DNA of 64,000 bases from Paramoeba atlantica (lineage: Eukaryota; Protista; Discosea): positions 1 through 64,000 of the forward strand of contig CDRNVI010000148.1 in the NCBI GenBank assembly GCA_977017575.1. Direction: 5' to 3'. Below, in pieces: positions 446 through 32,126 of the stretch. The notes under the pieces were generated by a model, which was not told the origin of the DNA, made no database searches, and saw nothing but the letters and a program-made list of their open reading frames with translations. The stretch's first letter is position 1, and every line of letters begins with the position of its first letter. Made by a program: the position numbers and the translations under genes.

Positions 446-3118
446 TTACTTGTGAATTTGCCAGACCATCACAGATCCATTCTGCAAAACTACTCCCAAC
501 AGATTTGAAGCTGCAGAAACACTCTTTTGCGAAAAGAGAAACGAAAGTAAGAAATCAAGAAACAAGAGAGGAGAAAGAAAAAAAGAAAAAAAAACCTTTA
601 CTTTCCCTCCTTTGAGTTGCAAGATTTGAAATCGATTTTTCCTTCCAATACCACAACTAAACCAAAATGCGTCTCCTGTAAAAAGAGATCCTTTCCTTCA
701 AACACACGAAGGGGAAAATAAAGAGTGGGAATATACCTGTTTGTGTAGCTAAGATTGTAATATTTCCATAGTTAATTGCTTCTCTTTGGTTTGATGCAGC
801 AAGGTGAACCACATTAACTCCCCCTTTTATTGAAGGAAAAATTAATAACAAAGAAAAAACTCGAAAGAAATTCTGAAAGAGGAAGCCCAACCTGATTCTC
901 GGTGAGGATCTTTTCTTCCTGCACCAAAAGATAGCACTGTGTGATTCCTAAAATATTTGTCACAAACAAAATTTTTAGGAGATGAAAGAGATAAAAATTA
1001 CTACCTTGTGGCAACAACGGTGTGTATATGACCAGCAACCACGCATGTACAACAAACGTTCATCAAAGAAGCCACAATTCGAGGTGAGTGAACAGTCTAA
1101 GTAAGAAATTTTTGAAAGAAATTTCTCAAAAATATGGAAAATGATGAGAGAGAATCAAACTTCAATTAGACCATGGCCGCATTGGCCTTGTTCAGAGGAA
1201 CCCCAAGTATAACAAACTCCATCTTTTGTCACACAAACAGCGTGAGACCCTCCAAGAGATATCTGAAAAAGAAGAGTTAAGAAAATATTTTTCAACCTGA
1301 AAAAAAGATTCAATACCTGGTGGACTCTTTTCATATTCAAAGATTTTAACAATTTTGGGACAGGAACAAAACATTTCTTGTCTTTACGATCTTTTTTTTC
1401 TTTCTCATCCAGGTCTCGAGTTTTTTTCATCTGAAACCCCAACTGAAAACAAGAAAAATGAAGAATCAAAAAAAAGTCATAAATATTTTGTTAAAAAGTT
1501 CAAAAAACTTGGCTCGATGAATTATCCCCCCAAATATAGACTCGTCCACTTTTTGTCACAACAGCTGTATTGTTGAGAGAAGTCGAAACGGTCTAAAGGA
1601 AAGATAATTAAGAAAGAGAAAAAAAGGGAGTGAGTCAATAAAAAAACCTTTGCTTTTTCATTTAATTGAACAGACCCAGGAAGATGAAAATCTTCAAAAT
1701 TGAATTTCAGTTAAGATCAAAAAAAAAAAGGAGAGAATGAATGAAGAACCAGAACAATCACCACGTCCAAGTCTTCCAAAATCTCCTCTCCCCCATGTTA
1801 ACACATCCCCAGAAAAGGACACAGCAGCTTTTGAGAATGAGAATGAGCGAATCTCCAGAAAGAAAGAGAAAAAGAGAAAAAGAAAAAAAAAACCAGAGTG
1901 ATATTGGGATGAAGAAATCCAAACAATATCGCATCCCTTCAACACTCTCACCTATCATCAAAAATTAATCCTTTTCTCTTTGACCAGTTTGACAAAAATA
2001 TCATTTACCTTTTTTGGAAATTTAATAGTGTCAGGAATATCATGCCCAAGTTGAAATTCCGCTCCACCTCCCCACCCAAACACAACACTTCCTTTGAGTT
2101 CATATTTTCTGAAAAGAGTGATTCAGTAAGAAAAAGGGAGAAAGTTACAAATTTGAGAAAAGATACATGTCCTGTGATTGTCCGTAAACACTGCACGGGT
2201 GAGAATGTGACCCACTTGACTCTAATAAAAGGTCAATCTCTTTTTCATTGACAAAAGTAAAACTGAATCACATGGAGAAAGAATTTTTCAAAAACCTTGT
2301 GGAGAAGAAAAGCTTTCTTCTTGAATCATCATATCCCCATTGGAGACTTCCTCTTCAGCAATCTGAAGAGGATTGGGGAAAATTAAAAAGAGAAAAATAA
2401 GAGAAAAATAAGAGAAAAAAAGGGAAATCAAAAAGAGAAAATGACAAGAGACCAAACTATCATCTTCATGTTTGTTTCGATGCAATAACAAATTCACTTG
2501 AACTCCTGATGGATAAATGGAAAAGAGGAAAAAACCACAAATGAATCACCAAATCTAAAATTTTAAAAAGAAAGGAAAAAAGTTTGAACCAATGGCGTCA
2601 AGAAGAATATCCACAGGGTTCCATTGATGAAGATCAGGAACGAGAAGATGTCGATAATCATTGTAAAGACGAAGAAATAATGGGATATGACCTCCAGATG
2701 CTGCCCAATGAAGACAATTCCATCTCCTTCCGTCATCTACCAGATCAACAAGACAACCTGTGACATGTCACACAAGAGGAAAAAAAGAATGGATGATGAG
2801 TCGAACACAAAAAAGAGGATTTGGAACAACTGATGAATTGAAGAGACCTTTTTGAGAGAGGAGAAGTTCGACAATTTCAAGATGCCCCCCAGCTGCAGCA
2901 CAATGCAAGGGAGTGATCCCAGCCATGTCTTTTTCCCTTCCATCAGTCCTCCCAACAATCGCTTCCTGCAACTCAAACTCATCTTCTTCTTTTTTGGCTC
3001 GATTATCTCTTTTCTTTTTCCATTTAATGTTGACAGAGATTCCAGAGAGCAAAGCATTCTCAACTTGTTCTACATCACCAACCCAGGCAACTCTCCAAAT
3101 CCAAAGAAGTCCTTCCAT
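446..3118 (-). CDS. Multi-exon protein with N-terminal ankyrin repeats and C-terminal RCC1-like repeats
   Basis: Ankyrin motifs ITPLHCAAAGGHLEIVELLL (~2850-2910) and WNCLHWAASGGH (~2690-2720). RCC1 motifs GDVLTWGRGDFGRLGRG (~1760-1810), ISLGGSHAVCVTKDGVCYTWGSSEQGQCGHG (~1170-1260) and CVVAGHIHTVVAT (~1010-1050). The 3' end is approximate. Confidence 0.72.
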
Positions 3119-3341
3119 CTTTCTTCACTAGAAAGAGAAAACGAATTGTTACGCCATGATCTCCCTTCTTCCGTTGAAGGTTTCGTCAAAAAAGAGAAAA
3201 AAATCAAAAAAAAAAATAGATCACTAAATTTTAGAGTTAGAATTAGGTTTCTATATTTTTGGAACTCTCAAAAACTCTTTTTTGTTTTTTTTTGGTGTTT
3301 GGTTCGCTTCATTGTTTTTTGGGGCAAGTTTTTGGAGCAAG

Positions 3342-6300
3342 ATGGATCCTCCTTTCTCTCCACGAACACCATCTTCTACTCCAAATGTCTCCCCTTTGGT
3401 GAACCGAACGCTCTCTCCAACTCTCTCTCCTGTTGGTCCAACAACCGCAACAACCAGACCGCTTTCCCCAACAGACTTTGTGATGATTCCTTCTTCTCCT
3501 TCCTTTTCTCCTCCACCTGAACCCGCTCCCCACCCCGATTCTTCTCCGACCAGTCAATACTCTCGAATCTCTCATGCAACATTCCCTCCTTCTCCACATT
3601 TGTCTCCTTCTCAATTATCAACAACAACCCCTCTCACAGTCCCCTCCTCTTCATCCTCTTCAAAAATTCGGAGAAGAACCAAAAAGCCTCGTTCTCTTTC
3701 TCGTTCTCGTTCTCGTTCTCATTCCCGTTCTCCTTCTCCTTCTCCTTCTCCTTCTCCTTCCTCTTCTTCCTCTTCATACTCTCTTTGGTTCCAAGTGGGT
3801 CTCTTGGTCATCATGACAACCATTTTAACCCATTTTTTCTCTTCTTTTTACGGATTTGTGGGGATGTGTATCTTAGTGGTCCTCTTAAGAGCAAAAAGGC
3901 CTTCTCTTTCTACTCCTTCTTCCTCTTCTGGTTCTTCATCTTCAATCTCTTCTTCAATCTCTTCTCCAATTTCTTCTCCATCTTTATCTTCTACTCGATC
4001 TGAAAATGAGTATGAACTCCGTGAACTTCCAAGTGATTTATCTCTTGAGTTAGAAATTGGGAGTTTGAAAGAGGGAGAAGAAAGAGCAGAGAGTTTTCGG
4101 GAATTAGATTCTGGAAAGAAGGATAATAAACAAGTTGAAGAAGGTGAAGAACAAAAAGACAGAGATCCTGTGAAAAGGATATCCAAAGAACATCATTTGA
4201 AACGGAATTCAAAAGATCGATACTCCACCCCACCCACTGGAGCCCACTTTTCTTCTTCTTCTCTTATCGAACCGCCTCTTCGAAAAACGACCTCACTTTT
4301 CTCATCTTCTTCAACTTCTCCATCACTTAGAAAATTCTTTTCACCACAAAAAGAAAGACGTGAGGAGCAACTCCTTCGAAATCAGCCTGCTTTTCCAACA
4401 ACAGAATCAGAACAACTTCAACGTGTTGAAGAAATGAACAAATGCCTCGAATTATATGAAGTCGAGAAAAAGAGAAAGGGAGAATCCTACAACGTCAACA
4501 AACACTTAATTCATTGTTGTGTTGTCAATGATGCTGTCATGGCGCAATTCCTCATTGAACAAGCTGGTGCAAATCCTCTCTATCATCTTACAGATCGTGA
4601 TGTGGGGATTGGAGACGAGAAAAGCAAAATTTTTTCCGCAGGAGAGACTCCTCTTGATGTTGCAACACGATTCGAATGTCAAGATGTTCTTGTAATTTTA
4701 AACGAGAAAAAAAAGAGAGGAAAGCAATGGATATTTCCTTCCATTCCTTCTTTTATGTCTCCTCTTCGAATTATGGTTGGAGATGTAAGGAGACAACAAC
4801 AGAATGGAAGTGATAGTATTATGACTCGAAGTACTGGCGATAGTACAGCAGGAAGTGGACCAACATCTCCTTCTTCAAGTGATGAAAAAAGTACCTTTTT
4901 TTCTCCTCCTACTTCTCCTTTTATTGATTCGAAAAAAGGTCGACCAACTTCAGTTCGAGTTCAAACTTTTAATCAGCCAAAAGACTCTCCTCTTCTCCGT
5001 GTCCCAAGAACACCATTATCTTCTTCTTCTTCTTCTTCTTCTTCTTCTTCTTCAGGACCGCCAAAATATGCTGTAACAAAAGCTGTTCGCCCCGCTCCTC
5101 CTCCTGAAGTTGATTCTCTTGTTGATGGTTTGAGAGAAGGTCCAAGTCGCGAAGAGTCAAGAAGAGAGTTTGCAACTATATTCTCTGCAATTGATTCTCC
5201 AAGGTTTGTTGATTTTGTGAGTGTGTGTGTTGTGGTGATTTAATTTTATTTGGTTTTTGAGAGTTTTTATGATTTGTAGGAGAGAGAGAATGTTGTTGGG
5301 AGACTGGAGAAGCAACAAAAATCAATTTTCGAAAGAAACTCGAACTCGTGCCACTGCAACAAAGTTTGTAACCATTTTACTCAGAATATCTTATTTGATT
5401 GTTTTTTTTTGATTTTTGTTGTGTTTTCTTCTCTATCTTTCTTCCTCCAGATATTACATCATGGAATATTATTGGAATTTGATCACTTATCTTGGGAAGA
5501 GAAAAGAGAGAAGAACCCGTCTTGATGAGTTTTTAAAAGAGAGTACGTCTTTTATTAAAAGAAGAGAGAAAATAATACAAAATTGGGGATCCGAATGTAA
5601 AAAATTTAACTTTTGTGACAGGGAAATACCCCAAACAAGATGCAAAGAGGATTCTTCAGGATCATTATTTTATGGAATCAAAATTTTTGAGAGTAAAAAG
5701 AACACAAATGAGAATCGAACATTTTCAGGCACTGCCTCTCTCTCTCATTCTACTCTTTCCTTTTCATTTTTTCTCTTTCTTTCTCTTTTTTATTTTCTCT
5801 TTTTGTCTTTTCTCATACAAAATCAATCCAGATTCTTTCCCTGATTGGAACTGGAGGATTTGGACAAATTTTTCTCTGTCGCAAAAGAGACACAGGAGAG
5901 ATTTTGGCGGTTAAAAAAATGTCTCAAAAAATATTGAAATTGAGAAATAAGGCTGTTCATGTGAAGAATGAGAGAGATGTTTTGGCGAAAGGGTATGATT
6001 CTCCATGGTTGGTCCATTTACTTTATTCTTTTCAAGGTTTGTTGGTATTCTTTTTTCGATTTTCCTTCTTTGTTTTTTTTCAAGTTTCCAAAAAGTTGAA
6101 ATCAAATTATTGATTTTCCGTTTCTCTTTTCTCTTTTCTCCGTCTCAAAGATGAATCCTCTCTTTATCTTGCAATGGAGTATGTCCCAGGAGGCGATCTC
6201 AGAGCTCTCTTAGACGCAATCGGAGTTCTCGCATCTGATTGTGTTAAATTTTACTCAACTCAAATGATTATGTGTATTCGCTCGTTACATTATTTGGGGT

Positions 6301-22430: not shown

Positions 22431-22987
22431 CAAATCAAAAAAAAAAACGATTTTCTCGTTCAAAAAACGAGTGTTGAAAAAAAAGACAAAAAAGAAAGAG
22501 AAGTTGAAACACTTTTATCATTTTGATTATTACTATTTTACATAGAGTTAAAAAGACAAAAATACCCTCAAATCATTGGAGCGAAAGTCGCAAGAAAATT
22601 GCGACAATGAGTGTCTTATTCTCTTTATACTACAACAACAAAACATACTAAATTTCAGGAAAAACAATCAGGCATTCTTTTCACCCAATGTCAAACAAAG
22701 TTTCAGAAATGTGATTTATCTCAAACAACACAAAATATTTTTACAGTAATGAGAAGAAAAATCATTTAATCTACTTTTGAGATGGTATTTTTTAGAAAAT
22801 GAATTTTTTTTCTTGGAAACAAAATGAATCATTGAGTAATACACTCAACCACATCACAACATCAAAGATAGAGAGAGATGGAGAGAGGAAGATTGGGAGA
22901 GGGGAACATTGATTTTTCTGGTGCTAAAAAAAGAACCCTATTTTTTCTTTCCCTTTTGTTTCAGTTTTTTTGGATGTCTCTCTTTTC

Positions 22988-23003
22988 CACGGGGTTCTAA
23001 CTC
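22988..23003 (+). repeat. Left terminal inverted repeat (16 bp)
   Basis: CACGGGGTTCTAACTC, exact reverse complement of 30934-30949. Confidence 0.85.
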
Positions 23004-23160
23004 AAGCCAAATGAAAAAGACCAAGAGTTTCTTTGACATCCAATTCAGGAATGTGATTTTGACGTTTGGATTATCATAGGATTCTTTCAATCTCAGTGAA
23101 ATATTGGGATTCATTTGAGCGAAGGTCACGAAAAAGAACGAACTTTCGTTGGTGTGGCAT

Positions 23161-23230
23161 TGGGCAAAACTGGGCGAAACTGGGCGAAACTGGGCGAAAC
23201 TGGGCGAAACTGGGCGAAACTGGGCGAATC
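23161..23230 (+). repeat. Subterminal 10-bp tandem repeat (TGGGCGAAAC) x7
   Basis: Five perfect units flanked by one variant unit at each end (TGGGCAAAAC, TGGGCGAATC). Confidence 0.95.
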
Positions 23231-23728
23231 TGCTGTGGGTTTGCGAAAGGGTTGGCACCATACAACAAGTGAGAGATAGGAAAATTGGTTTGTGGTCAAG
23301 ATTTTGGAGATTCTGTGGTGATTCATTTGTTCTTGAAAGTTTGGTCTGCTTGTGCTGTTGTGATCAGAAATTCCTTGAGAGTTTCTGTTCCCTGCAAATC
23401 TTTGAGAAGGAACAAATATCGTGAACAAATAATTAAAATTACTTGCAAAAATTCCAATTTTCAGCATCTACAAACTCTTGACTACTCTCCACCAGACCAA
23501 AAGATCTCATCAACACTCAGAGTGTGGTTCCACCCTGAAACAACCCCCACCCTCTCCCCTCTTTCATTGTCCTCCAAACACTGGTGGAGTTCTGCAGTGA
23601 AAACACACTTGAAATTGGATCTTCTGTAGTTTTTGGTTTCCCTTTCTTTTTTTTCTTAAAATTAGTGCCACTATTCTCAGTTGACTGAACTTCCCTCTCC
23701 TTTTTCACAGCGTTTCCAAGAGAGAAAA

Positions 23729-26700
23729 ATGGATTTAATCCCTGATGGACTCCCAAAGAAACGTGAGTTTCTTGTTGTTTACCAATACCTTGCGCTGACC
23801 CTTTACCATCATTTTGACAAGTTGAGTGAGGATGAGAAGGAGTATGATGCGATCTCATTTAATGAGATTGTCGCGAAATGTTCTCAATGTTGCCCAGAGA
23901 TTCGATCAATTGAGAGCGCAAAATTTTCCACTTATATCCCACCATTGATATCTAAACTCTTTGATGTCAAAAGGGTGAGGAACTGGAAAAAATACCCTCT
24001 GAAACATTCCACTGGAATCAAACCAAGATTGGATCCCTTTATCCAATCATTTTGTCATCATCTTCTAAAAAGAACTTGGAAGCAAACAACTTTGTTTGAA
24101 GTTGGGTTGCCACCACCCAGAAGGTAAGTGGTGTTCTTTTCTTTTTTAGTGTTCACTGAGAGTGTTTTTTGAGAAAAAAAAGTGTATTTGAGGGGAAAAA
24201 TGAAATATTTTTCTTACCCCCATTTTTCTTTTTTAGAAGAAGGAAGAAACATCAGAAGGTGGGGCTTGCCCATGACAGGAGTGAGTTGAGTCCTGAACCA
24301 ATGATGATTACAAAGGAGGAGGAGAAGCCATTATTCTTTTCCCCCTTTTTTGAGTTTATTGATGATCATCACCATGATTTGTGCCCTGGAATCTCTGATA
24401 CTGCAACAGTTGTTCAGAATGCACAAAGAATTGCAGATTCTGATGGAGTTGTGAAGCGGAAATATATAGCGGAGAAATCGAAGTCTGGGTCCAGAGTAAT
24501 TGGAGTTCTTCAAGCTGGAAAACTTTTTTTTTCATTTTGTGAACGGGTTCTCTTTTTTTATCTATTTCTTTTTATTGATAAAATATTTATTGATGAGGGA
24601 TGATTTGTGTGATGATGATGATGGAATGGGGATAGTGTGTGTGGTGGATAGGAAAAGAAATATTTACATTTTTTTTCTTTTGATTCTGTGAAGGTTCGTC
24701 AAGAAGGTAGTTCTTCAGCTGCAGGTCGCTTTTGTCCCTCATGTCACCAAGCAATCCAATACTTGAAAAAGTGGAATGCAAATCAAGAATATTTAATGGT
24801 ATGTGTTTGTCTTTTTTTTTTGAGATCTTTTTAAAAAAATATCATCCTGTATGATAAAAAAGTAAAGATTTTTTAACTGACTTTATTTTGCTTGTGTTCC
24901 AATAGAAGAACCAAGAACAGCCTCCAGCCTCTTGTCATCCTCTCTCTCTTCTTGTACATCAAGTCATTGAACAGTATGGTGATGAATGGGTGAACTCCTT
25001 CAATGGGAAATTTATTCAAACCCAACTTGAGGTGCTTTTGAACAATACTCCAAATGGAAATCGATGGGACCAAGAGATTTTAAATTTCTTTGCAACACTT
25101 CAGTTTTATGGGGGTAAGCGAGTGATTAATCTTTTGCGTGGTAAAGGATGCGAGGGAAAAAAAGGGGATTTTCATTATGATCTTAAAACAACAAACCTCT
25201 GTATTCCAGCTGATTCAACTCTCCGTCGACTCATTCCTCCTGTTGAGCCTTATCAATGGTTTGATGATAAAGGTGCTCAAGTTACCCAACGGATTCAGAT
25301 CCTTGTTCAAATGCTCAAAAAACAACGAATCGATGGTCATGATCTTCAAGGAGGTGGGCTCATTTGTGATGAAATGGAGATCAGATCTGGTCTTGTATAT
25401 TTACGTACATCAGGACGGTTTGTGGGTCTTGTTGACAAATATTTAAAAGATTGCGAATTGGATCCAAATCTATTGGTTGACTATACACCAGAACTTGCAA
25501 AAAAGGTTTTTTTTGTTTTGTTTTCCAAATAATTGTTTTCATAAATCCTTAAAAATATACACAAACAAAAAACTAAAACTAAAACACTAGTTGTTGTTGT
25601 TTGTGTGTTTCTCTCTTTTTCTTTTTCTTTTGTTTTAAAACAAAAGTATTAATAGGTGTGTCAAATTTTTTTTATTTCGAATTGTGGTACCATTGCATTC
25701 CCAGTTACATTTATTCCAACAATATCGCTGACAGGGACCCAGCTGTTTGAAGTGTTTACAAAGATCTCAAATGAAATGAAGGAAAAGGAAATCGTTGTTA
25801 TGTGGACCAGCTCTGATGGATTTTCAGGTTCTCTTGATTATTCAACGAAAATGAAGGATGTTTTACATTTTTTTGATTATGTTCATCTGGTCAAGAATGG
25901 TCGAAATAACTTACTCAATCGACTGATTCAAATTGATGGAGAGAAATTTTTGATGAAAACCCTCTCGAACTGGTGGTCCAATTCCGTTGAATTACAACTT
26001 GCTTTGAAGTTAGATGATATATGTCCATCAGATAAGCAAAATCTTGTCCCTGTGATGAATTTGCTCCGTGCTGCCACCAAAATCAAGGAATTTGGTCAGA
26101 ACACTGCGAATGAAAGGGAAAAAAAGAAAGTCTTTGCTCTTGTCAAGTATCTTGAAATGTTGCTTTGTCTTCATGATCTTTTTTCAAACAACTCTTGGGA
26201 CATTGATTGTAAGATTGAGACAGCAACAGGATTGATAAAACGACTCGAGACCTACCAGGCCCAATCAAAAAGACAGTTTACAACCACAGAGTTCTTTAAC
26301 CAGGTATTTTATTTTCTTTCAATTGATTTATTATTTATTATTTAATTAAATGAATTACATGACACACCACACACTCTCTTTTCAACTTTTGTGGTCTAAT
26401 TGTTTTCCCAAAAATTGTTTTTGCAAAAATGTTAATTATATCTTTTTTTTTTCTTTTTCAATAGACTCTTCAGACTTTAAACAACTTAGTCACCTTTTTG
26501 AAGAAAGAAGATGTGTATTTTATGACCCATCGAAGAACATCAATGTTAGGAACCAATTTGTGTGAAAATCACTTTTCTGTGATTCGAAGCAAGGTTTTTG
26601 TTTATTTATTATTTTCTTTTCTTCTTTTTTCTCTTTTACACCTTCTTTTCTTTTATGTTCTTTTCTCCAATATTTTTTCCCCTCTTCCTCTCTTTTTGTT

Positions 26701-29631
26701 TACCTCCTCTATCCTTTGGTCATTTTTCTTTCATCTTATATCATTTTTCTTTGTGTTTTCTTTTGTTTTTTTGTCTTTTTCTACAGATCCGATACCCATC
26801 TCTTTATGAGTATGCTTTTTTAGAGTCACATGGATGGATTGAATTGATCAAAAAATTCTCCCCAAATCGGTTGTATGCCATGCCCAAACGCACTCTTGGC
26901 AAGAAATCTGCTTTGAAGTATAATGACCAAACAGGAGTTATCTTTGATTTCTCTGAGCTTTCTTCGTTGATTTCTTATACTAAGGAGAAAAGAAAAAAAT
27001 CTTCTTCTTCTCTGTTTCCATCTGCAACTCCAGAGCAAGTTGCTCTTGCTAAAATGATTGCTGATGCATACCGTTGCACCCGAAAAAGATTGACAACTCG
27101 ACAAATGACCTGCTTAGTTGTTGGAGGTGATGAATCACATCGAATTGTTCAAACGCTTCAAACATCTGATTCTTTCCCATCACAACTTTATCCATGTCCA
27201 TGGGAAGATTGCCCAAAGCAAGTTTGGATTTTTTTTTTTTTTTTCAAGAAGGAAAATTCAAGAATTTTTTTCTTTTTTTTTTTCTAATACAATAATTATT
27301 AACAGTACCGATTTCTTGGCTATTTAAATAACCATCTTGTTAAAAGACATAGTGGTGAACATCCATTTCCAACTGAAACATCAAAGAATTCAAATGTCAC
27401 TCTTACTCCTCCAAATGAACCAGACTTCTCAAGCCTCGAAGGACAAGTGGTTGAAATTGAGGACAGATCTTGTGAAAGTGTGGTTGAAATTGAGGATGCA
27501 TCTTGTGAAAGTGTGGAGGAATTTTGTAAAAGTGTAGTTGGTAAAAAGGATGATAACTGTTTTGGTGGGTTTGTTGTTTGGGATGGTGAGACAACAGGTA
27601 AAACGAAGGGAAGTAATAAGCAATCATTTGTTTCTCTTGCCCTTGTTGCTTGGAAATTTGGAGAGTCATCCAAAAAAAAACTTGAATTTCATGAAGCAAT
27701 TAATCCAGGTATTTTTTCTTCTCCTCTCTCTTCTCTCTTCTCCTTTTTTCTCTTTTTTCTTTTTAATTAGAAATACAACTCACAATACCAAAAACAATAG
27801 GGGAGGAGATTCCAATAACTTCCCAGGCTTACAACATTCACGGATTGTCACATCAGTTTCTCCGAAAAAGGGATACATTTGATCAAGTCTTTCCTCGATT
27901 TTTTCGATTTTTAAATCTTCTCCGGACAAAAGAAAAACCACTTGTGATGATGATTGCTCATAATGGTAAGGGTTGCGATGAACCAACATTGAAGAATGAC
28001 TGTCAGCGTTATGGGATTCAGGTTCCTTCATTTGTACGATTTTTTGATAGCAAGGAGTTATATTTCGAGATTGGACGAGACAAAGGCTCTTTGGATCGTT
28101 ATCCAAAATGGAGTGTCGACCATATTTGTACAACATTTTCGATTGATAGATCATTACGGGGAAAATGCCATGATGCTTTACTTGATGCACGGGTTCAACT
28201 GAAAATTGTTGAATTTCTTTATGAAAAATACAAAACCGAAAATGCGAAACTCAAAATTCACCTGGTCCAAAATGCACCAAATGAAGAATATCGCCAAGCC
28301 ACATCATCTGATGCCAGGAAACCTGACGAGAGAATTTTAAAGAGGGTACTGCCAGAATTATCCCTTTCTCAATTTTTGGTGGATTTTTATGTTGAGAAAA
28401 AAATTGTAAGAAGGGAGGGGAAAGGGAAGAAGAGGGAGAACAAGGTGAAGAAAGAAGAGAAGGAGAAGGAGAAGGAGAGAGAGAAAGGGAAGGAGGAGGA
28501 AGGAAAGAGGAAGAGGAAGAGGGAGGAAAGTAAAACAACTTGGGAAAGTGAGAGAGAAGAGGAGAAGGAAAGAGAAAGGGAAAGAGAGAGGAAAGAGAGG
28601 GAGAGAGAGAGGGAGGGAGAGAGAGAGAAAAAAAAAAGAGAGAAAATCAAGAGAGAAAAAGAGAAAAAAGTAAGAGAAAAAAAGGAAAGGCAGAGAGAGG
28701 GAGAGAAAAGGAATTTCACAACAGGGCTGCGTAAATATTCAGAACAACTGAACTTTAAAAAATCGTATTCTTTTTTGGTTGGTTTCTCATTTTTCTCTTC
28801 TCTTTTTTCTGTTATCTGCTCACCACAAATAAAATAGCCTGAAACGGAGAAGTTTTTATCCTCTGACCCACAAAAAAGAATTTTACTGTACCCTAATCTC
28901 GATAGGTCTTCTGTTGAAATTTTCCCAAAGGATCTCAATAGTTTGGTATCTAACGCTTATTTGAATGATTCACTAATTGATTTCTACTTGAAGTATTTGA
29001 TGAAAGTATTTGTTTTTTCATTTTTTTACTTTTTAAAGGGTTTTTTTTTTTAAAGGGTTTTTTTTTTTAAAGGGTTTTTTTTTTTAATTTTATTTTGTAG
29101 AACAAACAAACAACTGCCTTCTCATTTCTCTGTCTCTCTACATTCTTTCTCACCAAGTTGGAGAATTTGGAACACGATTATTCAATTCTTTCACGCTGGT
29201 TCTTGGACTATGATAAAATCGACTATTTGTTTCTTCCTTTCAACATTAAGGATTCCCATTGGTCTTTATTCGTTCTTAGTATCCCAGAACAAAAAATGTG
29301 GCACCTTGATTCAATGAGAGGGTTTTTGTCACACCGTGTCGACACTGTTATTGAAAAAATCAAGAAGCTTTTTCAGTCAAACTTTCTTCCCAAGAGATTG
29401 GGGAGATTGGAAAGATTGGAAGTGGTGAAACCCATTGTACCCCAACAGGAAAATGATGTGGATTGTGGAGTCTTTGTCATGAAATATGTTGAGGAATTTC
29501 TGTTGCATTTGAGCCAGGAGGAAAAACCAGATAGTTTTCTGACTCAATCATGGTTCACCAAAAACAAAGAACGTTCAGAAGTCTCCAATCTTATTGTTTC
29601 ACTTGCAGCTGAGAAAAATCAGAGCCAATAA
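23729..29631 (+). CDS. P-element-family DDE transposase fused to C2H2 zinc finger, DEDDh 3'-5' exonuclease and Ulp1/SENP (C48) protease; ~1,566 aa, 11 exons
   Basis: Exons 23729-24123, 24237-24546, 24694-24798, 24906-25505, 25656-26303, 26465-26593, 26787-27221, 27306-27708, 27801-28777, 28838-29005 and 29101-29631 join in frame (4,701 nt). Transposase: NGNRWDQEILNFFATLQFYGGKRV, ICDEM, SSDG, DYVHLVKNGRN, NLCENHFSVIR. Finger: CPWEDCPKQYRFLGYLNNHLVKRH. Exonuclease: WDGETTG, AHNGKGCD, HDALLDA. Protease: LNDSLIDFY, SHWSL, HLDSM, PQQENDVDCG. An extra upstream exon is possible. Confidence 0.88.
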
Positions 29632-29685
29632 AACCACAGAAACAAACACAACCCAAACCATTTTTTTCCTCTTTTTATTTTATTT

Positions 29686-30654
29686 TTATTTTTTGGAGAA
29701 AGGAGAGGTTGTTGAGGAGGAGGAGAGTTTGTTACAATAAGAAGGACAAGAGGGGGTTTGTTCCCCCACTTTCTCTCTCTTTTTCAGTGGAGGAGGTACA
29801 GGGATGGTCAGAGCTTCAATTTTCTCCCGGCAAAGAGTGTTTGGATCAACACCAAAAAGTCGTAAATAAGATCGGTGGATAATAAAAAGGCCAACCAATC
29901 TATCGGTTGCAGAAACAGACAAAACATCTTCCAAACTATCGTCATAACCTTCTTCTGTTCCATGACACAGTTGGTCAGTGTCCAAAATGAGAACATCCCC
30001 AATTTTTAAATTAAAAGCAAGATCAATACCCCCAATCTCAAGCCCACCTTGTTGGTCATCATCCAAATGGATCATAACCAAAACAGAAATAAAATCATTC
30101 CTGTCGTAATGCATAATTGATCTTCCAGCAGGACACATAAATAAGTGAAAGATTCCAAAATTTCGTTCCAGCAAGTTGTTTTCCTCTAAACAATTCCAAA
30201 TATCTGGTCGATATCTTTGAACCCTCTGAGAAAGTGTTCGCCCAAGGTTTTCAAGACAAGGTTGCAGAACTGGCTTCACTTCAGCTTCATAACGCCCCCC
30301 AATTCCAGCAGGGTGGATCGTGGAGTGACCTCGTTGCCTCCATTCACCACAAAACATAAAGGCTCTCTCCCCTCTTGTTGGGTCATTTGAATGATCCCAA
30401 TGTGTCTCACGACAGGCCAACAGAGCTTGTTGAAAATCCTTCATTTCATCGCGAGTAAATACTTCCTTGAGAAAATGGGCCCGATAACACCACTTTCCCT
30501 GTCGCTCAACTTGTAAATAAGCTGAGCTATTAACACGAAGACAATTTGGGTTGGGCTCCCATGTTGGCTTTGTATTCGTTTTTAGATATCGTACCAGTCT
30601 GAGAAGTCCTGACCTCTTCTTTCTTTTCTTTTTTTGAATGGGAGAGTCTTCCAT
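29686..30654 (-). CDS. TET/JBP-family 2-oxoglutarate/Fe(II) dioxygenase (Naegleria Tet-like); intronless, 322 aa
   Basis: HxD motif MHYDRND; GGLEIGG..IGDVLIL strand pattern; distal His in LCHG; DRLVGLFIIHR resembling the TET RISLVFYQH strand with its 2OG-binding Arg. Confidence 0.8.
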   Translation of the reverse strand: MEDSPIQKKKRKKRSGLLRLVRYLKTNTKPTWEPNPNCLRVNSSAYLQVERQGKWCYRAHFLKEVFTRDEMKDFQQALLACRETHWDHSNDPTRGERAFMFCGEWRQRGHSTIHPAGIGGRYEAEVKPVLQPCLENLGRTLSQRVQRYRPDIWNCLEENNLLERNFGIFHLFMCPAGRSIMHYDRNDFISVLVMIHLDDDQQGGLEIGGIDLAFNLKIGDVLILDTDQLCHGTEEGYDDSLEDVLSVSATDRLVGLFIIHRSYLRLFGVDPNTLCREKIEALTIPVPPPLKKREKVGEQTPSCPSYCNKLSSSSTTSPFSKK

Positions 30655-30933
30655 GGATAATAAGGAGGGGGAGGAGGAAGGAGTTGTTCACGTTCTTGGT
30701 GAAAGAGTTGTAGAGTCAGAAAAACTAAAAATGATTGCGATTTAATCGTCAAAGACTTTCTCTTTGTTTCTCTACACAGCAGCTTCCACAAGAAAAATCA
30801 CAAAACTCAAAAAAAAAAACAAAGAAAAAAGTCACGACTTCAAATTTTTTTGAAAATTAGGACATCCTCAGGACCTTTTCCTTCCAGATGTCAAGAGGAG
30901 TTTTTGGAAATTTCGAACCGTGGAGTTTTGGAG

Positions 30934-30949
30934 GAGTTAGAACCCCGTG
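30934..30949 (-). repeat. Right terminal inverted repeat (16 bp)
   Basis: GAGTTAGAACCCCGTG, exact reverse complement of 22988-23003. Confidence 0.85.
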
Positions 30950-31733
30950 AAATTTTTGGACGAGTTTTTTGTGTGTTGTTTGGCACGAGAAGAGTTTCTC
31001 TCTCTCTCTCTCCGCTCTCTTGTTCTTCTTCAAGGGTGCTTGTTTCTCGGTCTTGCTTCAAACATTGCTGGGGAGAAGGTGGTTGATATGTAGTCTTTGT
31101 ACTTTGCCAGTCTTCCAGAGTGGGCGCACAAGCAAGGGGGTGGTCGCACTTGTCTTGCCGGTTGATGCTGCTCCGAAAAGATTGAATGGGCGATCTTGGG
31201 GGGCGATTTTACTGTTGTTCAAGGTCCTTCACTCGTCTGTTCGGATGGTTCTCAACCAGAGAGGTTTTCGGGATACTTGAGAGACACTTTTTTGACAGTG
31301 TTGAATTTTTTCAGGTGCTCTCAGTCGGTCTTCTGCAAGGTCCTCTCTCTTTTCGGAACCTGGGGGTCGGTTTGGAGCTGATAGGGCGGTTACCTTCGAG
31401 CTGCTTGAGGTCATCATGCCACCAGTGTTTGTTGCCGTCAGAGATGGGGGACGAGAGGTGTGGATCCTATCTCCCCAAGCAAGATGGTTCACTGATGTCC
31501 AATCACCAGATAAGAACGAAGGATACGCCCCCTCTTCCTTGTGATTTTTTTTGAACTCATCTCTTTTGAACTAATTTTCACATCAGACGCAAAAAGCCAA
31601 AAAATTTCGGAAACATCATAAATTTTCGTGGGATATCATTGAAATTTCGATGAGTTTTCGGGAACGTCAAGACGTTGGGGTTGGAACGTTCATTTTTTTG
31701 GTTTTTGTTTTCGGAGAGGAATGAGACGTTTTC

Positions 31734-32126
31734 CTACTGTTTCACTTTCCAATTGAAAAAAATTTCGCTGACAGCCAAGTTGAACGTGATCCAAAAGAAA
31801 AAAGGTAAATCAAAATGAAAATCGATCTCTCGAGCGAACAAGAAGAGAGGAGCGTACGTTCCAACAAACGAGATGAACACAGTTATTAAAAAGAAGGAGA
31901 GAAGATGAAAATCTGAATATCCATTCAAATGAAGAACCTCTCGATTGTAATGAGGATTATCAGAAACGAGAAAATCTCCAATGACAAAACCAGTGTACAA
32001 AAACAGAAGGTGAAAGAAAGTTTTGATTGGTTCGAATCCAAAATAATAAGGAAAACAAAGACTGTAAATCCCAGAAATGATGGTTAAAAGTGTGAAAGTC
32101 CAACTAACCAACCGTCCAGCACCCAT
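31734..32126 (-). CDS. Small multi-pass membrane protein, unknown function
   Basis: 130-aa ORF MGAGRLVSWTFTLLTIISGIYSLCF.. with about four hydrophobic segments. Confidence 0.6.
   Translation of the reverse strand: MGAGRLVSWTFTLLTIISGIYSLCFPYYFGFEPIKTFFHLLFLYTGFVIGDFLVSDNPHYNREVLHLNGYSDFHLLSFFLITVFISFVGTYAPLFLFAREIDFHFDLPFFFWITFNLAVSEIFFNWKVKQ

Follow-up and report, generated by a model that had tools for sequence, protein, structure and literature searches.

We analysed a window of 64,000 nucleotides from the Paramoeba atlantica assembly GCA_977017575.1 (contig CDRNVI010000148.1, positions 1 to 64,000 of the forward strand), which contains a mobile element of 7,962 bp at positions 22988-30949. 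The initial annotation of this DNA had described a perfect 16-bp inverted repeat around two convergent genes whose stops are 54 bp apart, and the sequence confirms this layout. The longer gene probably encodes a single spliced protein of 1,559 amino acids (aa) with a transposase core followed by an exonuclease and a protease domain. The shorter gene, the passenger, encodes a predicted dioxygenase of the TET/JBP family. The element consists of the following main parts:

22988-23003, plus strand: left terminal inverted repeat (TIR) CACGGGGTTCTAACTC, an exact 16-mer with a single occurrence in the window
30934-30949, minus strand: right TIR, the perfect complement of the left one, with a single occurrence in the window
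23729-29631, plus strand: 11-exon gene (ATG at 23729, stop at 29629-29631) for the probable 1,559-aa transposase-exonuclease-protease, with an open frame and all introns GT..AG
30654 down to 29686, minus strand: intronless passenger gene for a 322-aa protein of the TET/JBP fold, a predicted 2-oxoglutarate/Fe(II) dioxygenase

Ends and copies of the element

The window has 36% G+C (32% A, 32% T), with many runs of A/G and C/T. In a genome of such low complexity perfect inverted 16-mers occur often, and a repeat of this kind might stand around two host genes by coincidence. We counted 361 perfect inverted pairs 0.5-12 kb apart in the window, compared with 0-15 in Markov shuffles. However, a low-complexity filter left 4 of the 361 pairs, three of which are still A/G- or C/T-rich, and the CACGGGGTTCTAACTC pair is the sole one that uses all four bases. 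The chance of about 2e-4 given for this match in the initial annotation holds for this particular pair but, with 361 pairs in the window, is too optimistic as a general rule.

The decisive support for the boundaries comes from other copies and not from statistics. The further copies L002, L011 and L003 all come from one ENA assembly, ERZ24900291. Counting the window copy, L002 and L011, there are at least three near-identical full copies (99.2-99.6% identity), each at a different place. L011 matches window positions 22985-30946 at 99.3% and both of its flanks are unrelated to the window. L002 matches positions 22983-30868 at 99.56% and resumes at 31245-31749 (99.8%). It lacks 376 bp (window 30869-31244; L002:15062-15063), namely the right repeat and 295 bp of flank, which means that this copy is no longer excisable from that end. 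L003 is an older, truncated copy with 90% identity, which covers window positions 28446-30957, from the last protease exons through the dioxygenase gene to the right end.

At the left end, the flanks of the window copy, L002 and L011 are all different and join the element exactly at the C of CACGGGG. L002 and L011 both carry the left 16-mer, their upstream flanks are unrelated to that of the window, and they part from the window left flank exactly at 22988. At the right end, L011, L003 and one X5 contig diverge from the window at 30946-30957. Of the 16 bases of the right TIR, 14 are kept in L003, where the similarity ends a few bases beyond, and 13 in L011, where the final three differ. Read contigs from X1 and X2 terminate exactly at 30949, and one X5 contig continues from 30949 into other sequence. 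The edges of the repeat thus fall, to the base, where the four copies cease to resemble each other and where contigs break. A coincidental repeat around host genes is refuted by the copy boundaries in L002, L011 and L003, and we assign it a negligible probability.

In all three full copies the repeated unit contains both genes, and in L003 the dioxygenase gene is also present, with similarity reaching the right TIR. The two checks proposed in the initial annotation, a search for further copies linking both genes and for the 16-mer at the ends of other copies, therefore came out in favour of a TIR-bounded mobile element. Moreover, the k-mer depth of read contigs is higher over the element than over the right flank, 16 versus 3.8 in X1 and 209-317 versus 74-80 in X2. 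This excess of about fourfold fits several copies, although such depth is not a copy number.

The flanks of the copies are mutually unrelated except for a stretch of about 800 bp on the right that is common to L002 and the window. The window copy is flanked by CTCTTTTC on the left and AAATTTTT on the right, and one further feature is of interest here:

30950-30957, no strand: AAATTTTT, candidate 8-bp target-site duplication; the eight bases to the right of the window copy equal the eight bases to the left of the L002 copy

Since AAATTTTT stands to the left of L002, and L002 shares the right flank of the window, we infer an 8-bp duplication for that insertion. By our own calculation at 32% A and 32% T, an 8-of-8 match between flanks has a chance of about 1e-4 per comparison, and about a dozen flank pairs were comparable. 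Insertion of the element probably makes an 8-bp target-site duplication.

The 800 bp to the right of the element (30950-31749) are a separate unit whose ends are likewise sharp. L002 diverges from the window exactly at 31749, and one X1 contig spans this stretch with about 250 other letters on either side. The window and L002 copies share their right flank because of this unit. The deepest contig (depth 23) of a run labelled 'RNA?' also falls in it.

Inside the ends, two short motifs may serve the transposase:

23170-23229, plus strand: subterminal tandem 10-mer CTGGGCGAAA in about 6-7 units, read directly from the sequence

This array is a possible transposase-binding array. L011 has two units fewer than the window, and unit number varies among the three full copies both in this array (23167-23186) and in a T-rich tandem repeat of the last intron of the long gene (29021-29100). 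The 8-mer TTGACATC is common to both ends, about 45-55 bp inside (within 22988-23060 and 30880-30949). By analogy with the Drosophila P element it is a possible internal transposase-binding site, and a match of eight bases could also be due to chance. Rfam and tRNA scans of the window gave no matches.

The passenger dioxygenase and its relatives

The initial annotation had called the second gene TET/JBP-like. A Pfam search with the 322-aa protein gave no match, including to Tet_JBP (PF12851). The residues on which the assignment draws are:

Passenger gene, minus strand: H182 (30109-30111), D184, D187, H231 and R252

An exhaustive homologue search returned 96 representative relatives at 50% identity, with 14 below 1e-30. 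Across 34 aligned members H182, D184, H231 and R252 are invariant and D187 is nearly so. When Pfam was run on these 34 relatives, the matches were weak: eight to Tet_JBP (the best at 6.6e-4, below the cut-off), five to TauD and four to WelO5. An AlphaFold2 model built on the same alignment reached a mean predicted local confidence (pLDDT) of 84 and a predicted template-modelling score (pTM) of 0.82. In a Foldseek search against the PDB the top 26 matches were all TET/JBP proteins (CcTet at 3.9e-9, NgTET1, TET2, CMD1), followed by AlkB homologues at about 1e-6. Among the AFDB Swiss-Prot structures the top 14 were all kinetoplastid JBP2/JBP1 thymine dioxygenases (5.9e-12 to 4.4e-9, 14-17% identity); NgTET1 came next and then ALKBH5 at 2.6e-6. 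By shape, the ESM Atlas returned phage Tet_JBP clusters with a template-modelling (TM) score of 0.66. Since TET/JBP proteins are nearest in these structure libraries, the passenger has the TET/JBP fold and belongs to a subfamily that escapes the curated model. The predicted fold and the conserved residues agree, and together they show the passenger to be a TET/JBP-family 2-oxoglutarate/Fe(II) dioxygenase.

The best structural matches, kinetoplastid JBP1/JBP2 and Naegleria NgTET1, share the H-x-D...H...R residues with the passenger. In contrast to them, the passenger has no J-binding or helicase domain, is encoded by a transposon and is only 11-17% identical. D187 lies three residues past the H-x-D motif, a spacing that we take to be that of D234 in NgTET1. 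That residue hydrogen-bonds N4 of 5-methylcytosine (5mC) and aligns with an Asp of JBP1 (PMC11040006, PMC11804724). It gives no separation of cytosine from thymine specificity (PMC11040006, PMC11804724). The initial annotation had stated that TET enzymes oxidise 5mC. The substrate of the passenger need not be 5mC, the closest predicted structures being those of the thymine dioxygenases JBP2 and JBP1.

Relatives of the passenger were found beside other transposons. Among the environmental contigs that we fetched with a neighbour gene of more than 500 aa, each has a transposase or a transposon structure beside the homologue. In L006 (positions 1144-3897; JGI 3300060879) a 563-aa piggyBac-type transposase (DDE_Tnp_1_7, 4.7e-32) is followed 150 bp downstream, on the same strand, by a homologue 46% identical to the passenger; no TIRs were found in this 4-kb contig. 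In L012 (242-3258; JGI 3300060905) a 545-aa Harbinger/PIF-type transposase (DDE_Tnp_4, 6.9e-15) precedes by 110 bp, again on the same strand, a 422-aa homologue with 37% identity to the window dioxygenase. L007, also from JGI 3300060905, is a 4.49-kb unit with 29-nt inverted repeats at 3-31 and 4465-4493 (93% complementary), within which a 1,037-aa unclassified protein is followed on the same strand by a homologue of 40% identity. The same 1,037-aa kind of protein lies upstream of the homologue in L008. It resembles pogo/DDE_1 weakly (0.72 for the L007 protein) and we left it unclassified. The contigs L009, L010 and L013 were too short or had neighbours that could not be classified, and a metagenome scan with the dioxygenase alignment (A2) gave no matches.

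Two paralogues in ERZ24900291, 53-60% identical, stand in other contexts (L001:10001-10858 and L005:223-1483). The neighbours of the first are reverse-transcriptase genes and large unclassified open reading frames (ORFs). The second, which is frameshifted, is part of a convergent string of unclassified ORFs. No Pfam or PDB match was obtained for the neighbours of either paralogue, and we left their vehicles unclassified.

The dioxygenase frame is intact in the window copy. It is frameshifted in L002 by an additional G at 30414 and in L011 by an additional AA after 30138, and in L003 there are only fragments of the dioxygenase ORF. The AA insertion is the sole form in the X1 and X2 contigs and makes up about a tenth of the depth in X3. 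Two frameshifts in 2 x 969 nt of dioxygenase compare with none in 2 x 4,680 nt of transposase (p about 0.03 in our own rough test on a small sample). Since the gene was frameshifted independently in two of the three full copies, a copy needs no dioxygenase in cis.

Contigs from X3 also contain variants of the element (26823-26837, 30103-30165, 30270-30320), in which 46 of the 55 changed places are C>T or G>A. CpG sites are over-represented among these changes, at 5 of 18 where 8.5% was expected (p 0.015), which hints faintly that the X3 variants are older copies with cytosine deamination. The idea that X3 was a bisulfite-treated run was rejected, as single contigs mix both kinds of change.

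The transposase and its accessory domains

The long gene has the following exons, all on the plus strand:

23729-24123, 24237-24495, 24694-24798 and 24906-25505: exons 1-4
25656-26303, 26465-26593, 26787-27221 and 27306-27708: exons 5-8
27771-28777, 28838-29005 and 29101-29631: exons 9-11

The introns are 60-198 bp long and the spliced frame is 4,680 nt. Alternatives exist at the exon 2/3 and exon 9/10 junctions, and they would shift the length by a few residues. Joints between read contigs, consulted for the splice junctions, were mostly low-complexity artefacts. The frame is open in the window copy, in L002 and in L011. Exonic substitutions number 9-12 per copy in the latter two, a rate like that of non-coding DNA; there are no exonic indels in this gene in either copy, and the introns have several. 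The protein probably carries, in order, a P/THAP9-type core, a C2H2 finger, a DEDDh exonuclease, a charged linker and a Ulp1/SENP protease:

24906-26593, plus strand: putative P/THAP9-type (TNP-like) helix-turn-helix and RNase H core with an insertion domain, from a weak Pfam match, Atlas matches and motifs
Core residues, plus strand: D408 (25368-25370), D507 (25815-25817), D527-x-x-H530 (25875-25886) and E703 (26564-26566)
27195-27350, plus strand: C2H2 zinc finger across the exon 7/8 junction (C849...H872), read from the spliced translation
27582-28186, plus strand: DEDDh 3'-5' exonuclease (D950, E952, D1061, H1125, D1130), Pfam RNase_T 1.3e-7
28838-29628, plus strand: Ulp1/SENP-type C48 cysteine protease (H1436, D1453, Q1499, C1505), Pfam Peptidase_C48 2e-22

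We searched Pfam exon by exon. Over the first catalytic Asp we obtained a match to TNP-like_RNaseH_N at 5.5e-4, with 20.7 bits against a cut-off of 24.6 bits. In an ESM Atlas feature search with exon 5 (score 0.95), clusters of TNP-like_GBD and/or TNP-like_RNaseH_N were the commonest among the 100 nearest, and for exon 4 the best named clusters were TNP-like_RNaseH_N/Tnp_P_element (0.91). The spliced protein also has the residues of the P signature in the right order, namely D408, D507, D527-Y-V-H530, a gap of about 175 residues and E703 in C-E-N-H-F, as read by eye instead of from an alignment with a P sequence. D(2)H is the signature motif of the P superfamily, and the catalytic triads are D230/D303/E531 in the P element and D304/D374/E613 in THAP9 (PMC8230255). 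No Pfam match to KDZ (Kyakuja-Dileera-Zisupton), CxC, Plavaka, hAT, MULE, CACTA or another transposase family was found in any exon at E up to 10. The phmmer searches of exons 4 and 5 against the PDB and a metagenome scan with exon 5 also gave no matches. Homologue searches with exons 4 and 5 returned the element's own copies only, in a length window that excluded full-length P transposases. The transposase is most likely of the P/THAP9 type, in line with the P type named in the initial annotation, and we consider its membership of the P superfamily probable.

The element shares with the Drosophila P element and human THAP9 (PDB 6P5A; PMC8230255) the order of Asp, Asp, D-x-x-H, long helical insertion domain and Glu, as well as short TIRs and a probable 8-bp duplication. 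The spacing from the first to the second Asp is 70-73 residues in those proteins and 99 here. Unlike them, our element has no detected THAP domain, has a C-terminal C2H2 finger, DEDDh exonuclease and Ulp1 domain, is interrupted by ten introns and carries a passenger gene.

The C2H2 finger has no Pfam match because an intron splits it. In the PDB the exonuclease domain matches weakly to the epsilon subunit of DNA polymerase III (9e-4) and TREX2, and the protease matches Ulp1 (5.6e-9) and SENP1 (9e-9). Ulp1 domains are known on Mutator and Ginger1 transposases (PMC2836005). There, as here, a C48 protease whose catalytic triad is intact stands at the C-terminus, and it is fused to a DDE transposase or encoded along with one. 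However, the transposase superfamily is a different one, and the exonuclease is an extra domain of the element described here. Between exonuclease and protease lies a low-complexity linker of about 100 residues rich in Lys, Glu and Arg (28390-28700). In the read tables its DNA stands out by very deep contig coverage and numerous false joints.

Mechanism, alternatives and meaning

We conclude, with a probability of about 0.72, that the locus holds an autonomous and recently active 7,962-bp cut-and-paste transposon, whose probable P-type transposase bears an exonuclease and a protease and whose TET/JBP cargo would act in trans. Transposition would proceed by P-type cut-and-paste with an 8-bp duplication on insertion. 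The exonuclease and the protease would be accessory modules, which may process cleaved ends and modulate SUMO-dependent repair or chromatin responses. The dioxygenase would act on a 5-methylpyrimidine of DNA (5mC or thymine), flipping the base out and hydroxylating the methyl group. It presumably works in trans on element copies or on the genome at large, altering a base mark that limits the element, which is the role proposed for the fungal and Chlamydomonas cargo. If it acts in trans, single copies can lose the gene, as two have done here. The erasure of a silencing mark would correspond to the fungal and Chlamydomonas model, and in a euglenozoan host it would be plausible that the enzyme writes 5-hydroxymethyluracil (hmU) or base J.

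Several observations weigh against this interpretation. The P assignment draws on a sub-threshold Pfam match, a language-model feature search and motifs read by eye. In the Atlas search with exon 4, three unnamed clusters (0.95-0.91) come before any named one, and the AlphaFold2 model of exon 5 alone, made without an alignment, reached a pLDDT of 38. No Pfam match to a THAP domain was seen in exons 1-4 at E up to 10; such a domain is not expected in every P-like element. The run labelled 'RNA?' yielded short contigs over parts of exons 7, 9 and 11 and the dioxygenase gene, which do not decide the splice junctions. The 8-bp duplication was inferred once and across two contigs, and no direct repeat was seen around the window copy or the L011 copy itself. 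The mismatched flanks of single contigs could arise from recombination between copies, or from copy-switching by the assembler within an 8-kb repeat of 99.5% identity. The CpG depletion is weak, hardly beyond that of GpC (0.52 versus 0.57 in the window, 0.46 versus 0.59 in the element), so that heavy CpG methylation of the host is not evident. Finally, the independent frameshifts mean that the passenger may be decaying cargo without a current role.

The last point can be put as an alternative of its own, in which the dioxygenase was captured passively, does nothing for the element and is now decaying. The truncated L003, with its ORF fragments, and the frameshifts in a gene five times shorter than the intact transposase frame speak for it. 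Yet the window copy and most of the X3 depth carry no frameshift, and since the proteins of transposons work in trans, single copies are expected to decay. The family is also large, with 96 representatives and invariant catalytic residues, and its members stand next to at least three further kinds of transposase, a recurrence that speaks for a selected function of the cargo. We regard a roleless passenger as unlikely. The initial annotation had gone to the opposite side and called the element a self-contained anti-silencing system. This was pure conjecture, and it sits badly with a dioxygenase that is broken in two of three full copies next to a 4.7-kb transposase frame that is open in all of them. 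Alternatively, the passenger could be a thymine hydroxylase of the JBP kind, and the element would then write hmU or base J, for self-marking or for stopping read-through transcription, instead of erasing methylation. The reviewed proteins closest in structure, kinetoplastid JBP2/JBP1 ahead of NgTET1, point this way, as does the Asp three residues past H-x-D, which by its spacing would be common to the passenger and JBP1. We see this as a real possibility, though not the one we would expect.

A different question is whether the vehicle belongs to P at all or to another superfamily that makes 8-bp duplications, above all Zisupton/KDZ. Zisupton transposases have a zinc finger as well as a domain of the SUMO-protease type. 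In our element the zinc finger, the Ulp1 domain, the probable 8-bp duplication and the TET/JBP cargo would all fit, and the assignment to P lacks a significant match to a curated model. KDZ elements are indeed associated with TET/JBP and make 8-bp duplications (PMC12730594). However, the Pfam families KDZ, CxC and Plavaka were absent from every exon at E up to 10, two separate exons (4 and 5) pointed to TNP-like/THAP9 clusters in the Atlas, the sole Pfam match in the core is the one to TNP-like_RNaseH_N, and the D-x-x-H signature with the long gap before the catalytic Glu fits P. Because of the missing KDZ signal and the P-type features we rejected a Zisupton/KDZ vehicle, and a vehicle outside P seems to us improbable.

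Cargo of this kind is already known from elsewhere. The initial annotation had named KDZ and Plavaka as carriers, but the distribution is far wider: complete TET/JBP-carrying transposons form eleven lineages in three fungal groups, and it was proposed that they escape methylation-based silencing (Kojima 2025, PMC12730594). P and piggyBac are not among these eleven lineages (PMC12730594). In Chlamydomonas, CMD1 lies inside the unclassified element DNA-1_cRei, which has 67-bp TIRs and an 8-bp duplication, and other TET/JBP genes lie in Helitron2 families (bioRxiv 10.1101/2022.06.16.496473). The novelty is therefore narrower than first assumed. Our literature search, whose coverage was incomplete, found no paper tying TET/JBP to P or piggyBac elements.

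The fungal TET/JBP DNA transposons (Iyer et al.) resemble our element in being TIR-bounded, in having the dioxygenase beside the transposase, in using unrelated vehicles and in their proposed escape from base-modification silencing. It differs from them in its P-type vehicle, its non-fungal host, a dioxygenase that is not seen by Pfam Tet_JBP and a transposase with exonuclease and Ulp1 domains. Like the Chlamydomonas DNA-1_cRei and Helitron2 elements, it is a non-fungal protist transposon with TET/JBP cargo, TIRs, a (here probable) 8-bp duplication and few copies, some of them internally deleted. In contrast, DNA-1_cRei is 18.4 kb long and has four genes and no recognisable transposase, whereas the element in the window has two genes and a recognisable one.

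As a more far-reaching and rather doubtful proposal, the passenger and its relatives may form a distinct TET/JBP clade, invisible to Pfam, whose genes rove as cargo. Transposons of at least four types (P, piggyBac, Harbinger and an unclassified TIR element) would have acquired them, in protists that belong neither to the fungi nor to the green algae. If the host is euglenozoan, the enzyme may work there like JBP and hydroxylate thymine, and such transposons would write hmU or base J instead of erasing 5mC. Since standard domain models miss this subfamily, surveys based on Pfam undercount such cargo.

Transposons with their own DNA-base-modifying enzyme are the clearest case of direct tampering with host epigenetic defence, and they are documented in fungi and Chlamydomonas. 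The element described here probably adds the P superfamily as a vehicle, piggyBac through the relatives of its passenger, and, as host, a further lineage of protists. With a P-type transposase joined to an exonuclease of the proofreading type and a SUMO protease, it is also a candidate for novel biochemistry of transposition. What the cargo does could readily be tested on natural variation, as near-identical copies, and apparently different samples, have the dioxygenase either intact (the window and most of X3) or frameshifted (X1, X2, L002 and L011). Base J is made by euglenozoans, through enzymes of the TET/JBP family. Should the host belong to this group, the element would have a bearing on the relation between the base J system and mobile elements.

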